From sequence record NC_042013.1: a DNA stretch of 64,000 nt. One strand, given 5' to 3'. Below, piece after piece: positions 13,905-25,213 of this stretch (position 1 is its first letter; the number at the start of each line of letters is the position of its first letter). The notes beneath the pieces were generated by a model. The model worked only from the letters and a program-made list of their open reading frames with translations. It searched no databases and was not told the DNA's origin. Both the position numbers and the translations under genes were made by a program.

Positions 13905-14023
13905 CTTGAGTGGCAGGGCTCGAACCTGCGACATTCTGATTACTTTTAGAGGCTTCAGAATCGAACTGAATAGTTACCTTTGCCTCTTACAGTCAGACGC
14001 TCTACCAACTGAGCTACACCCAA
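13905..14023 (-). tRNA. interrupted tRNA, Asn-type body, 46-nt insertion in the anticodon loop
   Basis: TTGGGTG/CACTCAA acceptor, perfect D arm, TCTGA/TCAGA anticodon stem, ATGTC variable loop, GCAGG-TTCGAGC-CCTGC T arm; removing 13988-13943 gives loop CT-GTT-AA; no CCA. Confidence 0.85.
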
Positions 14024-14050
14024 ACAATCCGCATCGCTTATTGTTTGTAT

Positions 14051-14079
14051 AATATACATTGTTATTTATCTGGCGTCAA
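14051..14079 (-). promoter_or_regulatory. sigma70-like promoter (with overlapping TAAATA) for the interrupted tRNA-Asn
   Basis: TTGACG-17 nt-TATATT; TAAATA at 14063-14068. Confidence 0.7.
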
Positions 14080-14101
14080 CATTTAAATTTATTAAAAGGA
14101 C

Positions 14102-14130
14102 AAAAAAATACCCCCTGACGGGGTATTTTT
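14102..14130. terminator. bidirectional intrinsic terminator
   Basis: AAAAAATACCCC-CTGAC-GGGGTATTTTT. Confidence 0.7.
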
Positions 14131-14292
14131 ATTAGATTGGTGTGTTAAGGAATGTGCAATCTCTATCATTAACGAGGATATCCATTAGTGTTTGTGCCGT
14201 TGATGATAATGGTTGTGTTATTCTTATAGTTTGATTTTGGTAAAGATGTTTACCATTACCTATAAGGGTATTTACGAAAAAATGCCTATTTT

Positions 14293-14616
14293 TCAAACAA
14301 TTGCAAAACGAATGCGATTAGATGTGTTAAGAATCTTAACATAATTCATACAAAATATTTTTTTATCAGTTGCTACCAGTATTTCCATAAAACCGGTAAT
14401 CACGTCATCAATTTTAGAAACGGACCTTGACACAACATAATAAGGATTATCCTCAAACACAAACGTTGGCACGGATACAGAATAAACGCGGTCTATATAT
14501 TTCTCTTGAATAATCTTTTCAAAATTTTTAACGACACCGATTTCTAGTTCGGACAGTTCATCGGATACAATTGAATATGTGTTGCAAAACATCTCAAGAT
14601 TAAATGGCTTGATCAT
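14293..14616 (-). CDS. family C (PF..NFEKI.QEKY.DR) paralogue
   Basis: MIKPFN...VKNFEKIIQEKYIDRVY. Confidence 0.85.
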   Translation of the reverse strand: MIKPFNLEMFCNTYSIVSDELSELEIGVVKNFEKIIQEKYIDRVYSVSVPTFVFEDNPYYVVSRSVSKIDDVITGFMEILVATDKKIFCMNYVKILNTSNRIRFAIV

Positions 14617-14941
14617 GTAAATTCCCTATATAATGAAAAAACGCATACGACCCAAAAACTCTTTCATACTTATACATGTATAATTTTTTATCGGTAGTGA
14701 TCATAATTTCCAAGCTATTTGTAATTACCATCATTATATCAGGGACGGACGTTGCTTTGAAATTTAGTGATGAGTATATACCTACATTAGCTTCTAATAA
14801 ACTAAAAATTCGATCAGAATATTTTTCTTGAACGATTTGTTCAAAGTTTCTTAAAATATCAATATCTTTTTCTAAGAATTTATCAACATTCCGATAGGGA
14901 ATATTAAAAAATTTTGCCGCGCAAAATGGGCCTATCTTCAT
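14600..14941 (-). CDS. family C paralogue
   Basis: LRNFEQIVQEKYSDRIF. Confidence 0.85.
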   Translation of the reverse strand: MKIGPFCAAKFFNIPYRNVDKFLEKDIDILRNFEQIVQEKYSDRIFSLLEANVGIYSSLNFKATSVPDIMMVITNSLEIMITTDKKLYMYKYERVFGSYAFFHYIGNLHDQAI

Positions 14942-15291
14942 AATGGTTTCTCCGCAAATCGGATGAATGGCTGTGTTGAAATACCAATACGAAAATCATA
15001 TAAAAATAAAACAACGTCAGATGTTACCATTTTTTCCATGATCCATAAAATAGCAGCATCGACATCTGGAACGTATGTTGCTAACCATTTAATCTCGATG
15101 TCTCTATTTGCTTTCACCCTATCCACAGTGAATATACGATGATCATACTTTTCACGAATTATTTTCTCTAAATTTTTTAGTTTTGCTTTTTCCGCAGACG
15201 TGAAATTAGGATATGGAATTTTTAACATAGGTTTTTTGGATGGTTTATCATCCTCGCCAATGAATACTTTAAAATCAAATCTGCTAATCAT
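14938..15291 (-). CDS. family C paralogue
   Basis: LKNLEKIIREKYDHRIF. Confidence 0.85.
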   Translation of the reverse strand: MISRFDFKVFIGEDDKPSKKPMLKIPYPNFTSAEKAKLKNLEKIIREKYDHRIFTVDRVKANRDIEIKWLATYVPDVDAAILWIMEKMVTSDVVLFLYDFRIGISTQPFIRFAEKPL

Positions 15292-15623
15292 ACTATCATA
15301 TACCTAAAAATTTTCCTGCCAAACAAATTTTCGAATCGAGAGAGATATATCCAACTATCAGTTGATACCATAACGTTCATAATAAAAACAATCATCGTTT
15401 CTGCATCTGGAATTGTTCGACCAGTAAATGGGACTTCTATGCCACCAATATCCAACGCCAACGTATATTCAGGTATCACCCAAACACGATGTGCATATTT
15501 TTCTTGGACAATCTTTTCAAAATTTTTGAGAACACCAAAATCCTCCAAAGAGCATTCTCGCTTTATCCCTGTATATTCATCATCTATCTTTATGAAATCG
15601 TGTACGTTAAATGTTACTAACAT
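15288..15623 (-). CDS. family C paralogue
   Basis: LKNFEKIVQEKYAHRVW. Confidence 0.85.
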   Translation of the reverse strand: MLVTFNVHDFIKIDDEYTGIKRECSLEDFGVLKNFEKIVQEKYAHRVWVIPEYTLALDIGGIEVPFTGRTIPDAETMIVFIMNVMVSTDSWIYLSRFENLFGRKIFRYMIV

Positions 15624-23468: not shown

Positions 23469-23874
23469 ATATTGGTTTCCATTTATAAAAAATACAAAAA
23501 TCTGAATCAATATGAACTGAATAGTCGAAACCAAATATGGTTACTTTTTTATATTTTAGTAAAAGTTTAGTTAAGAAATATTTAAGTTCAGAGATTCGCA
23601 TATTATCGCCAAATAATAACCCGCAATCGCATCCGTTCATTTTTACGGCTGTCGGTGCTACGTTATATGGTACGCCTTGATAAAATACTTTCTGACGTGG
23701 AATTGAAAATAATTTATCTGGATATTCATTTTTCAATTCCGTCAACATATTTTCAAATTCTTGATAGGAAGCGTGTGGGACACCCAATGACCGCATTGTG
23801 TCTCCGTTATACCGGATATCCATCACTCCTACTTCCATGATTTCTGGAATATCAAAATACTCATCCCCACGCAT
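23455..23874 (-). CDS. family C-related protein (long form)
   Basis: ELKNEYPDKLF...Y.V.P..VKMNG. Confidence 0.75.
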   Translation of the reverse strand: MRGDEYFDIPEIMEVGVMDIRYNGDTMRSLGVPHASYQEFENMLTELKNEYPDKLFSIPRQKVFYQGVPYNVAPTAVKMNGCDCGLLFGDNMRISELKYFLTKLLLKYKKVTIFGFDYSVHIDSDFCIFYKWKPIYASV

Positions 23875-24316
23875 ATGTTATATTCCAATTCAATCTGATT
23901 TTTGTTTTTGCATTTGAGTTAGGTGCTGGATGTGTGCGTGATATTGACCATACGCTAATGCTATAGACTATGATTTTTGTTTCTTGATTTTTCTTGATAG
24001 TGTCTTCACAATCTTCTTGGAACTCTGCACAATTCTGATATGTGTACATTTGAAATTTGCGTTTACGACCATTTAGATTGATATGGTCTGGAAGTACTGC
24101 AAATTTTTTATTGTCACAATATATGAATGATTTATGAAAACCATATATGTTGTTTGGGAATTTTTTGTTTAGGTATTGGCATAGCTCATCAATTTCACTG
24201 ATGATTATCTGCTGGAAATCTGAACTATTAGGCCAGAACCCGTACGGCATCCGTCTTCCCATACAGTCATCATAACAACGTTCGATTAAATCATTTGAAT
24301 TTAGTTCAATTATCAT
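23861..24316 (-). CDS. family C-related protein (long form)
   Basis: LNKKFPNNIY...F.V.P.HINLNG. Confidence 0.75.
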   Translation of the reverse strand: MIIELNSNDLIERCYDDCMGRRMPYGFWPNSSDFQQIIISEIDELCQYLNKKFPNNIYGFHKSFIYCDNKKFAVLPDHINLNGRKRKFQMYTYQNCAEFQEDCEDTIKKNQETKIIVYSISVWSISRTHPAPNSNAKTKIRLNWNITYAWG

Positions 24317-24330
24317 ATGATTTCCTTTAG

Positions 24331-24407
24331 TGGTCGGAGTGGAGAGATTCGAACTCCCGACCCTCTGGTCCCAAACCAGATGCGCTACCAGACTGCGCTA
24401 CACTCCG
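24331..24407 (-). tRNA. tRNA-Pro(UGG) copy 1 (canonical)
   Basis: C1-G72, loop TT-TGG-GA, encoded CCA. Confidence 0.95.
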
Positions 24408-24945
24408 AATTTATTACAGAATAATGTATTGACCATCGTCCTTTTTGTTTTTTAAGCCGTTCTACTACCCATTGTGTTGATAGGATGGCGCGATTTGCCA
24501 GTGTTGACAATACTACGCTATATGGATTAATAATTGGTGCAAACATTATAATATGTTTGTCTTCATTTAGCAATATTTTTTGTATGTCATCTACCAAATT
24601 TTCAATTTCATCATATGGGGATTTTATGATTGAATATTGTTCGTTCATCACCGTTATAAATTTTGGGGTTTCCACATATTTTTCTTCTTTGTACATCACG
24701 TATGGCTTTACATAGCTGTACAAATTTGGAAAAGTTTTCAGCCGTTGTAGTTGAACGATATCGTTATAAATATCGAAACCGGTCACTTCAAAATCTTTGA
24801 CACCGTAATGGTCTTTAGTCGTTTCATCGTAGCAACTTTCAAGAAACATGTCTAAATCAAATGGAATAACCATTCTAAGTTTCACCTCGAGGTCGTCGTT
24901 AGAAATATGTTCATAAACTATTAGTTCATCAAGGGGAGATATCAT
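24385..24945 (-). CDS. family C-related protein (long form); 3' end overlaps tRNA-Pro 5' end
   Basis: VIPFDLDMFL...LKTFPNLY...YVETPKFI; AAGGA RBS. Confidence 0.75.
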   Translation of the reverse strand: MISPLDELIVYEHISNDDLEVKLRMVIPFDLDMFLESCYDETTKDHYGVKDFEVTGFDIYNDIVQLQRLKTFPNLYSYVKPYVMYKEEKYVETPKFITVMNEQYSIIKSPYDEIENLVDDIQKILLNEDKHIIMFAPIINPYSVVLSTLANRAILSTQWVVERLKKQKGRWSIHYSVINSECSAVW

Positions 24946-24954
24946 AGAAAGTCC

Positions 24955-25096
24955 TTATTCATTTGATGGTCGCTGTGTCCGAGAACTCTATTAACTGTTC
25001 TCATTCCGGTGACGCGGCGATCTATTTTCGAATGGTTCGTCACAACCGTGTTCGATTATTGATCCTGTTATAGAACAGCGACCATCAAATGAATAA
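24955..25096 (-). ncRNA. candidate structured RNA closed by a perfect 22-bp terminal helix
   Basis: TTATTCATTTGATGGTCGCTGT inverted repeat (24955-24976/25075-25096); inner GTGACG/CGTCAC and GAGAAC/GTTCTC hairpins; potential pseudoknot. Confidence 0.6.
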
Positions 25097-25104
25097 AGAA
25101 AGTG

Positions 25105-25213
25105 TGGTGCCTCAGAGGGGATTCGAACTCCTGACCTGCGGGTTATGAAAACTTTCCTCGAAACCTACCGAAAATTTTCAAAACCGCTGCTCTACCAACT
25201 GAGCTACTGAGGC
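25105..25213 (-). tRNA. interrupted tRNA, Met(CAU)-type, 33-nt insertion in the anticodon loop
   Basis: GCCTCAG/CTGAGGC acceptor, A73-CCA, perfect D arm, TTCGAAT T-loop; removing 25180-25148 gives loop TT-CAT-AA. Confidence 0.85.

Follow-up and report, generated by a model that had tools for sequence, protein, structure and literature searches.

The Agrobacterium jumbo phage Atu_ph07 carries three tRNA genes that are interrupted by short structured inserts of 46, 33 and 48 nucleotides (nt). Judged from insert-free alleles in a related phage and from the features of the tRNA bodies, each insert splits the anticodon between nucleotides 35 and 36, and the genes are predicted to encode tRNA-Asn(GUU), tRNA-Thr(UGU) and tRNA-Lys(UUU). 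We consider it probable that these are genuine tRNA genes with short introns at 35/36, that the introns are spliced by proteins, and that the inserts are linked to homing endonucleases. The Asn and Thr genes lie in the stretch of DNA analysed here (the window, 64,000 nt), which corresponds to positions 310,001-374,000 of record NC_042013.1 (MF403008.1), so that a window coordinate plus 310,000 gives the record coordinate; the Lys gene lies outside it. The window is identical in sequence to that part of the 490,380-bp genome of Atu_ph07, and every tRNA gene of the window is on the minus strand. The textbook view reserves protein splicing of tRNA introns for archaea and eukaryotes and regards the tRNA introns of bacteria as self-splicing group I ribozymes. 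This is not the first sighting of such genes: those of Atu_ph07 have already been listed, under wrong types, and introns in the tRNA genes of Lak megaphages were reported in 2019.

Three tRNA genes interrupted within the anticodon

The preliminary description of this stretch had reported two tRNA-shaped genes with larger inserts, of 46 and 33 nt, and both proved to be real, with the boundaries and the insert lengths exactly as given (Table 1). They score 57.2 and 54.7 bits against Rfam family RF00005 (E ~1e-9; gathering score 29 bits), which is within the range of 19 uninterrupted tRNAs. Read on the minus strand, both have complete acceptor, D, anticodon and T arms, and the span between the two strands of the anticodon stem, 53 nt in the Asn gene and 40 nt in the Thr gene, equals the seven loop nucleotides plus 46 and 33 nt, respectively. 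ARAGORN overlooks both genes in its default mode and recovers both in its intron mode.

Removal of the inserts between nucleotides 35 and 36 leaves the loops CU-GUU-AA (Asn) and UU-UGU-AA (Thr). With U1-A72, G73 and a variable loop AUGUC, the body of the first is like that of tRNA-Asn, and G1-C72, C2-G71 and A73 make the body of the second like that of tRNA-Thr. Once joined, the Asn exons match annotated tRNA-Asn genes (92% to Agrobacterium phage OLIVR5), the Thr exons annotated tRNA-Thr genes (86% to Sinorhizobium phage ort11) and the Lys exons annotated tRNA-Lys genes. The 3′ exon of the Asn gene starts with UAAUCAGA and terminates at the discriminator G, CCA not being encoded; that of the Thr gene starts with UAACCCGC and includes an encoded CCA.

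Phosso, a related Sinorhizobium phage of 469 kb, has insert-free tRNA-Asn(gtt) and tRNA-Lys(ttt) genes, and in the alignment with these the gap falls exactly at CTGT/TAA for Asn and CTTT/TAA for Lys, a placement that is unambiguous. The relatives of the Thr gene found in the IMG/VR database (loci L066/L123 and L155) all have the junction UUUG/UAA, and ARAGORN itself gives Lys(ttt) in Atu_ph07 and Thr(tgt) in L066 at the 35/36 junction.

Other identities were considered and rejected. Bacterial Tyr and Ser tRNAs are class II, and since the Asn, Thr and Lys genes are all class I (with variable loops of 5 nt in Asn and Thr), Tyr and Ser identities, which need a class II body, do not fit. The Thr gene read as CAU (Met or Ile2), with the insert 5′ of the loop, is inconsistent with its relatives, as L066 would then have CGU and L155 C33.

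The tRNA complement of Atu_ph07

Over the whole Atu_ph07 genome, ARAGORN finds 34 tRNA-like genes, among which there is no uninterrupted Asn or Thr tRNA and no second Lys(UUU), Lys(CUU) being the sole uninterrupted Lys tRNA. With the three interrupted genes counted, the predicted tRNAs of the phage serve all 20 amino acids. Lys, Asn and Thr account for 7.1%, 6.4% and 6.4% of the codons of Atu_ph07 (~20% together), with AAA, AAT and ACA preferred; given this share and the preference for A/U-ending codons, these should be among the tRNAs most needed by an A+T-rich phage on a G+C-rich host.

The published tRNAscan list of Atu_ph07 contains a Tyr-GTA of 119 nt, a Ser-TGA of 109 nt and a Gln-TTG of 125 nt (PMC6102473, Supplementary Table S1). 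The first two lie in the window and the third outside it, and the paper, which passes over all three uncommented, gives tRNAs for every amino acid but Asn and Thr (PMC6102473). We attribute the Tyr, Ser and Gln names to the assumption of an intron at 37/38, and the published absence of Asn and Thr tRNAs to the mis-typing of the interrupted genes. One gene in the same table is named 'Lys-CCT' (PMC6102473, Supplementary Table S1).

The tRNA cluster of the window also holds three copies of tRNA-Pro(ugg) (24331-24407, 26074-26151 and 28316-28393) and two of tRNA-Phe(gaa) (25908-25983 and 28698-28773). Elsewhere in the genome, a 'threonyl-tRNA synthetase' of 235 amino acids (record 483,864-484,571; L138:9864-10571, minus strand) has only a tRNA_SAD domain (Thr/Ala-tRNA synthetase second additional domain), which is curious given the interrupted tRNA-Thr.

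Structure and conservation of the inserts

No sequence similarity was found among the three inserts, none of them matches any Rfam family, and each has its own architecture. The Asn insert (type A1) consists of 1 nt, a 6-bp closing stem AGAGGC/GCCUCU, an 11-nt linker containing GG, and a T-arm-like hairpin UUCAG-UUCGAUU-CUGAA, which stacks directly on the closing stem and is followed by a 5-nt tail AAAAG. The 48-nt Lys insert (type A2) has three helices, with a 4-bp closing stem, a D-like hairpin, a T-like hairpin with the loop UGCRAAU and a tail AAMAK. The Thr insert (type B) is a 9-bp stem, AAAAUUUUC/GAAAGUUUU, with a 13-nt loop, GGUAGGUUUCGAG, and its helix extends into the exon, as the last two intron nucleotides pair with G35 and U34; in the predicted fold of this precursor U36, A37 and A38 lie within a continuous helix. 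A reading as repeats or miniature inverted-repeat transposable elements was rejected, because no insert has a second copy in the 490-kb genome.

In the minimum-free-energy folds of the Asn and Thr genes the cloverleaf is kept and the anticodon stem is prolonged into the insert. Both inserts carry GGTA and TTCGA, so that the preliminary description was right in this respect as well. TTCGA lies in the loop of the T-arm-like hairpin (TTCAG-TTCGATT-CTGAA) in the 46-nt insert and in the 13-nt hairpin loop in the 33-nt insert.

Insert-free alleles and covariation within the inserts, both of which it had been proposed to seek in related phages, were found: in addition to the empty sites of Phosso, 86 of the 87 helix cells are paired across all intron families, with 17 pairs changed on both sides (two or three distinct sequences per family). 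The type A1 relative is the intron of locus L104, which has the same 46-nt layout with 5 of the 6 closing pairs changed on both sides. Type A2 is common to L154/L202 (Lys) and L168 (Arg UCU), and in this family 100% of the cells are paired, versus 29-54% in slid-partner controls. Type B is common to L066/L123 and L155; across Atu_ph07, L066 and L155, 32 of 33 cells are paired and 4 pairs are changed on both sides. The exon stems of the interrupted genes are fully compensated, including those of the Lys genes of Atu_ph07 and L202, which share a homologous intron. This indicates that the tRNA constraint persisted after the arrival of the intron.

A T-arm-like hairpin is present in 12 of 24 distinct introns of the 35/36 type, all of these at least 44 nt long, where 0.06 would be expected from shuffles. 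The D- and T-loop-like words are therefore a real feature of the longer introns.

Promoters and transcription units

The promoter TTGACG-17-TATATT is found ahead of both interrupted genes of the window, in agreement with the preliminary description, and the pattern TTGAC[AG]-N16-18-TATA[AT]T occurs at only 9 sites in the whole 490-kb genome. Three of these sites serve the Asn, Thr and Lys genes, all with a 17-nt spacer and TATATT, and a fourth adjoins the HNH gene gp460 and the degenerate tRNA-like element described below. The word TAAATA is present near the Asn and Thr promoters, at differing positions. Downstream of the Lys gene there is a hairpin followed by a T run.

RNA repair genes and the search for an endonuclease

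RtcB, Pnk, Rnl1, other RNA ligases and splicing endonucleases had been suggested as targets for a search of the genome, and several repair enzymes were recovered. gp261 is an Rnl1-family ligase with the T4_Rnl1_C tRNA-specificity domain (PF09511, 2.9e-29; PF20819, 3.6e-07), gp86 is a PF09414 RNA ligase (Rnl2-like) encoded ~1 kb beyond the Lys gene, and gp195 is RlaP. gp253, published as 'protein serine-threonine phosphatase', combines an AAA_33 kinase (3.9e-18) with a Metallophos phosphatase (7.9e-10), which is the layout of bacterial Pnkp and not of the T4 HAD type. The genes for gp253 and gp261 belong to a neighbourhood of translation and RNA-repair genes (Table 1). The gene of gp86 is part of a same-strand string that begins past the terminator of the Lys gene and includes four unknown open reading frames (ORFs).

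A regular-expression scan gave no RtcB or RNase III signature. Profile scans covered about 50 of the phage proteins, those encoded close to the tRNAs, the ligases and other candidate repair genes, and no EndA was found among these; the scans yielded only HNH proteins, ligases, RlaP, the kinase-phosphatase, PTH2 and NUDIX. Single-sequence AlphaFold models of two unknown proteins of the ligase cluster had a predicted local distance difference test score (pLDDT) of 35 and were unusable. In IMG/VR, one ORF that adjoins interrupted tRNAs combines DUF2828, DUF7788 and VWA_2 domains and may be TROVE/Ro-like, and a second such ORF encodes an AAA_33 kinase domain; each may be a partner in RNA repair.

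Homing endonucleases and a degenerate tRNA locus

Free-standing homing endonucleases are known from phage tRNA clusters, such as F-TflIV of T5 and segB of T4. Atu_ph07 has three HNH proteins related to F-TflIV, gp465, gp460 and ASV44700, and a Jackhmmer search shows that this subfamily has exactly these three members in the genome (E values against ASV44700 of 9e-19 for gp465 and, by BLASTP, 3e-32 for gp460). Their homologues elsewhere are annotated as T5 F-TflIV-like and are sited between tRNA genes. A homing endonuclease gene adjoins the Thr and Lys genes, and the interrupted genes of IMG/VR loci L066, L024 and L104 likewise adjoin HNH or GIY-YIG genes; in a pooled scan of 34 ORFs neighbouring interrupted tRNAs in IMG/VR, 2 GIY-YIG and 2 HNH matches were obtained. 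The link to homing endonucleases is strong inside the Atu_ph07 genome, and it is not universal.

The gene for gp460 ends near the 3′ end of a tRNA-Leu gene (22329) and that for gp465 near the 3′ end of a tRNA-Phe gene (25908). The gaps are of 2-4 nt, from which it follows that both were inserted precisely between tRNA genes.

Beside gp460 lies a noncoding unit of ~460 nt that runs from a promoter to a hairpin and T-run terminator and ends in a degenerate tRNA-like element at 21024-21107, with a T arm and acceptor at 21024-21060. The preliminary description had counted this element (21025-21107, with an insert of about 11 nt) as a third interrupted tRNA gene, which we could not uphold: its D arm is poor, Rfam gives no match even at E<=1, shuffled sequences fold at least as well (z = +0.34), and it is called only by the intron mode of ARAGORN, as 'Ala agc'. 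A second copy resembling a tRNA 5′ half (CGAAAGT-TA-GCTC...GAGT-A-GCGGT) is found near 21250-21283 and would pair with the same 3′ acceptor strand. The unit looks like a decayed or rearranged tRNA locus.

Interrupted tRNA genes in other genomes

Scanning IMG/VR for the spacing of D arm and T arm revealed more than 100 interrupted tRNA genes, some of which are from giant viruses and have canonical introns in Ile(UAU) and Tyr tRNAs. With the 35/36 pattern 24 distinct phage cases were found, many of them on contigs of 100-480 kb. When bacterial and archaeal genome contigs were searched with a general 35/36 pattern, no example from a bacterial chromosome was found among the 120 matches listed; after structural filtering, these contained only canonical archaeal introns and artefacts from tandem tRNAs. 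A metagenome scan for relatives of the 33-nt intron gave stem-filter survivors that were all random, the pattern being too A/T-rich.

Several other kinds of interrupted tRNA gene were seen. A second family of phage inserts, which came from the D-arm/T-arm scan of IMG/VR, combines a hairpin with a conserved (A/C)CAGCAA word after it; the anticodon loop is intact, and the insert is on its 5′ side, at about 31/32. This family is abundant, and several interrupted tRNAs are often consecutive. Many giant-virus-type contigs (GVMAG and related; for example L004, L006, L011, L030 and L044) have tRNA-Ile(UAU) and tRNA-Tyr(GUA) with canonical 37/38 introns of 36-47 nt; these introns are eukaryote-style and are not to be pooled with the phage cases. 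The 636-kb uncultured phage LR756504.1 (L331) has a 187-nt tRNA-like gene at 495-681 with a 114-nt insert that contains a T-arm-like hairpin, and at 2786-2874 an 89-nt tRNA-Lys(ttt) that adjoins an F-TflIV-like HNH homologue.

Table 1 Features of the interrupted tRNA loci (window coordinates unless marked as record)
Feature	Position	Strand	Remarks
Interrupted tRNA-Asn(GUU)	13905-14023	-	Rfam RF00005, 57.2 bits
Asn 5′ exon	13989-14023	-	35 nt, ends ...CUGU
Asn intron, type A1	13943-13988	-	46 nt
Asn 3′ exon	13905-13942	-	
Promoter of tRNA-Asn unit	14051-14079	-	TTGACG-17-TATATT; sequence match
Terminator of gene upstream of Asn promoter	14104-14130		
tRNA-Ser(uga)	13788-13879	-	25 nt downstream of tRNA-Asn gene
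Interrupted tRNA-Thr(UGU)	25105-25213	-	Rfam RF00005, 54.7 bits over 25108-25213
Thr 5′ exon	25179-25213	-	35 nt, ends ...UUUG
Thr intron, type B	25146-25178	-	33 nt; fold z = -4.0
Thr 3′ exon	25105-25145	-	
Promoter of tRNA-Thr unit	25240-25268	-	TTGACG-17-TATATT; overlaps T4-late-like word TATAAATA
gp465, HNH homing endonuclease related to T5 F-TflIV	25296-25904	+	divergent; start 83 nt upstream of Thr gene
gp460, HNH, same family	21563-22327	+	Pfam HNH/HNH_3; adjoins degenerate tRNA-like remnant
Noncoding unit, promoter to terminator	20975-21473	-	~460 nt; promoter TTGACA-17-TATATT at 21445-21473
Interrupted tRNA-Lys(UUU)	record 68,156-68,280 (L003:18156-18280)	-	outside window; 125 nt, 48-nt insert; Rfam 56.5 bits
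ASV44700, HNH, same family			divergent from Lys gene; start 67 nt upstream
Translation/RNA-repair neighbourhood	record 196,416-201,863 (L132:45587-50000 + L133:1-1863)		HNH_5 (gp252), gp253, PTH2, NUDIX, Rnl1 (gp261)
(A/C)CAGCAA insert family	IMG/VR L017, L019, L021, L026, L060, L073, L076, L090, L093, L094, L097, L107, L121, L157, L204		

Proposed pathway and alternative explanations

Inserts of 33-48 nt are too small for any known self-splicing ribozyme class, so that the mature tRNA must be made by proteins. In the pathway that we propose, the precursors would be transcribed from their own promoters, and an endonuclease would cut after nucleotide 35 and before U36. This enzyme would recognise the tRNA body and the anticodon stem and not a particular intron fold; we favour a cut measured from the tRNA body because one exon junction is common to three unrelated intron folds. 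The ends would be healed, if needed, by the phage kinase-phosphatase gp253, and the broken anticodon loop, which is the natural substrate of Rnl1, would be sealed by the Rnl1-type tRNA ligase gp261 or by the Rnl2-like gp86. At the DNA level the inserts would travel with the free-standing homing endonuclease genes of the tRNA clusters and would probably shield the phage's own allele from cleavage by the neighbouring homing endonuclease, as in collaborative homing. The preliminary suggestion of a non-self-splicing tRNA intron in a phage is thus favoured by the comparative evidence, after correction of the position of the inserts, the identity of the tRNAs and the third example. It is favoured because the inserts are below group I size, the exons are under tRNA constraint, the interrupted genes supply the missing isoacceptors, and the phage has Rnl1 and a kinase-phosphatase.

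Several points weigh against splicing by proteins and a link to homing. The interrupted tRNAs are known here from their genes alone, from which we infer transcription, excision, the acting enzymes and the DNA immunity. No endonuclease candidate was found among the ~50 proteins near the tRNAs, ligases and repair genes (Pfam, PHROGs, NCBIfam), the three intron architectures have no common fold around the splice sites, and a U31-C39 mismatch would result in tRNA-Thr. The covariation rests on 2-3 distinct sequences per intron family, and the pattern used for the 35/36 census of IMG/VR forced U36A37A38. As for homing, the tRNA-Asn gene has no adjoining homing endonuclease gene, and the HNH homologues in SCTP-2, Muenster and LR756504 flank uninterrupted tRNAs, so that the linkage is not specific to interrupted genes and the family is a general tRNA-cluster homing endonuclease.

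An explanation that we regard as rather unlikely, and which is compatible with splicing, is that the genes produce anticodon-masked precursors or decoys that escape or titrate nucleases of the AriB, PrrC, RloC or PtuAB type: the anticodon and the U36AAU element would be buried or displaced, and processing, if any, would free a functional tRNA on need. AriB, the nuclease of PARIS, needs U36AAU39 and cuts between 40 and 41, leaving 3′-OH and 5′-P (Belukhina et al. 2025; PMC12409363). Its three main targets are tRNA-Lys(UUU), Thr(UGU) and Asn(GUU), and T5 requires its own variants of exactly these three tRNAs against PARIS (PMC12409363). Shielding or titration gains weight because the trio interrupted in Atu_ph07 is the same as that targeted by AriB; by simple arithmetic the chance of this exact trio among the eight U36A37A38 isoacceptor classes is ~1 in 56. 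In the IMG/VR set, 16 of the 24 interrupted U36AA tRNAs are species of the AriB trio, in a census whose pattern forced U36A37A38. The type B precursor, with U36, A37 and A38 in a continuous helix, points in the same direction, as do C39 in Thr and G39 in Lys, since T5 resistance maps to position 39. However, the precursors have an intact anticodon stem, where AriB cuts at 40/41, and tRNA-Asn retains the susceptible-type UAAUCA. Moreover, a shared U36AA loop could account for both the specificity of AriB and the preference for the insertion site with no functional link, and neither intact acceptor and T arms nor identity elements would be required of a pure decoy, which would not fill the 20-amino-acid set either. 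A combination of the two is possible, though tentative: jumbo phages would use protein-only splicing at 35/36, with their own Rnl1 and kinase-phosphatase, on introns spread by homing, and these would be retained preferentially in the Lys(UUU), Thr(UGU) and Asn(GUU) tRNAs, as the interrupted precursors would be invisible to PARIS-type or other anticodon nucleases. If this is true, the introns are a counter-defence device as well as a selfish element.

The absence of an endonuclease candidate among the ~50 proteins scanned and the 31-39 mismatch in tRNA-Thr would also fit dead genes, in which the insert is a scar or immunity mutation for the neighbouring homing endonuclease and the host supplies the Asn, Thr and Lys tRNAs. 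Homing endonuclease genes adjoin two of the three interrupted genes, and the nearby locus at 20975-21473 is clearly decayed. We nevertheless think this unlikely, as the cloverleaves are flawless and score in Rfam as uninterrupted genes do, the genes have their own near-consensus promoters, the exon stems show compensatory changes where the intron is homologous (Lys of Atu_ph07 and L202), the intron structure is itself conserved, and the genes lost would be the phage's most-used decoders of A/U-ending codons. Excision by host processing enzymes, with RNase P and a 3′ tRNA-end nuclease acting on the T-arm introns and RNase III on the long hairpins, has the attraction that cuts by RNase P and RNase III leave 3′-OH and 5′-P, which Rnl1 could seal directly. 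In type A1 the 5-bp and 6-bp stems plus nucleotide 1 make a 12-position RNase P stack that would place a cut at the 5′ splice site, and in six introns the 3′ splice site falls at position 76 of such a mini-tRNA (predicted folds); in type B, sites offset by 2 bp with a 3′ overhang on a ~20-bp helix have RNase III geometry, and the Lak introns were described as possibly tRNA-like (PMC6784885). We judge it improbable, because the mini-tRNA ruler fails for other members with tails of 1, 2 and 6 nt, the closing and T-like stems of the three-helix Lys type are separated by a 2-nt bulge, the cut of RNase Z, placed behind the discriminator, would come 3 nt too early, and no single enzyme accounts for all types. 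A small self-cleaving or self-splicing ribozyme, or an assembly artefact, has nothing but the structured nature of the inserts in its favour and is very hard to believe. No Rfam ribozyme or intron family, hammerhead included, was matched at E<=1 in window positions 13,000-29,500, the inserts share no sequence and have three different architectures, and their length of 33-48 nt falls short of known two-site self-splicing RNAs. Homologous inserts occupy this site in independently assembled genomes of other phages, which argues against an artefact.

Comparison with known systems

If the proposed pathway is correct, the only Asn, Thr and Lys(UUU) tRNAs of Atu_ph07 would need a protein-based cut-and-rejoin pathway, and searches of the literature yielded no mechanism for introns in phage tRNAs. 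Our results correct the tRNA complement published for the phage and show that tRNA finders mis-type such genes by assuming an intron at 37/38. Through their overlap with the AriB trio and their linkage to homing endonucleases, the interrupted genes bring together tRNA-targeting immunity, RNA repair and mobile introns.

Group I introns likewise interrupt bacterial-type anticodon loops and are often mobile through homing endonucleases, but they have ~200 nt or more with a catalytic core (P3-P9 and a G-binding site), and the inserts of 33, 46 and 48 nt, which have no Rfam match, were rejected as members. The protein-spliced introns of archaea and eukaryotes (EndA/TSEN with RtcB or Trl1) are similar in being short, in lying in the anticodon loop and in needing an endonuclease and a ligase, and Rnl1 belongs to the ligase family of fungal and plant Trl1. 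T4 Pnkp and Rnl1 can substitute for Trl1 in yeast. The inserts of Atu_ph07 differ in having a bacterial host, a 35/36 instead of a 37/38 position and no bulge-helix-bulge. This motif, with two 3-nt bulges, a 4-bp helix between them and a splice site in each, was looked for and rejected, since type B folds as a continuous helix and type A has a 2-bp helix between a 3-nt bulge and the U36AA bulge.

The repair of PrrC-cut tRNA-Lys by T4 Pnkp and Rnl1 also involves an Rnl1 with a tRNA-specific C-terminal domain, a kinase-phosphatase and a broken anticodon loop as substrate, and one of the three Atu_ph07 genes encodes tRNA-Lys(UUU). In Atu_ph07, by contrast, the break would be programmed, two-sited and insert-removing, and the healing enzyme would be a kinase-metallophosphatase rather than the HAD type of T4. 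The tRNAs with which T5 defeats PARIS are the same three isoacceptors, and two of the Atu_ph07 trio have a non-U39, but T5 has point substitutions in uninterrupted tRNAs, those for resistance being at positions 39 and 41 (PMC12409363), whereas the Atu_ph07 genes are interrupted. As regards homing, F-TflIV-type HNH genes lie between the tRNA genes of Atu_ph07, and an endonuclease-less intron in an adjoining gene could interrupt the target, in the manner of collaborative homing. The example of the latter is F-CphI of cyanophages with the psbA intron, and this collaborating intron is a self-splicing group I intron, unlike the inserts of Atu_ph07.

The closest parallel is with the Lak megaphages, whose tRNA introns were called 'enigmatic', one of them resembling a tRNA and being displaced from the site predicted for it (Devoto et al. 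2019; PMC6784885). Lak phages and Atu_ph07 alike are jumbo phages, and they belong to one broad group (2.2 of PMC7824862); in both cases the insert is in the anticodon loop, belongs to no Rfam family, contains a T-arm-like hairpin and is misplaced by tRNAscan; the 33-nt insert of Atu_ph07 departs from this pattern in having no stem-closed T arm. The hairpins of the Lak introns include aattgg-TTCGAAT-ccaatt and aatgg-TTCGATT-ccatt. A 'tRNA-Tyr GTA' with a 93-nt intron in Table S6 of that study (PMC6784885) reads CTGT/.../TAATCTCT, and it is therefore probably an Asn(GUU) with a 35/36 intron. The Lak introns and the Atu_ph07 inserts are of the same kind. The former are 79-114 nt long and were described as possibly encoding a tRNA, whereas the latter are minimal, with 33-48 nt in three architectures, and come from a cultivated phage with a tractable host, with HNH linkage and a defined trio of isoacceptors. 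Growing on a standard laboratory host, Atu_ph07 would make the 'enigmatic' Lak introns experimentally tractable, offering three defined substrates with mapped junctions and named candidates for the ligase and the healing enzyme.

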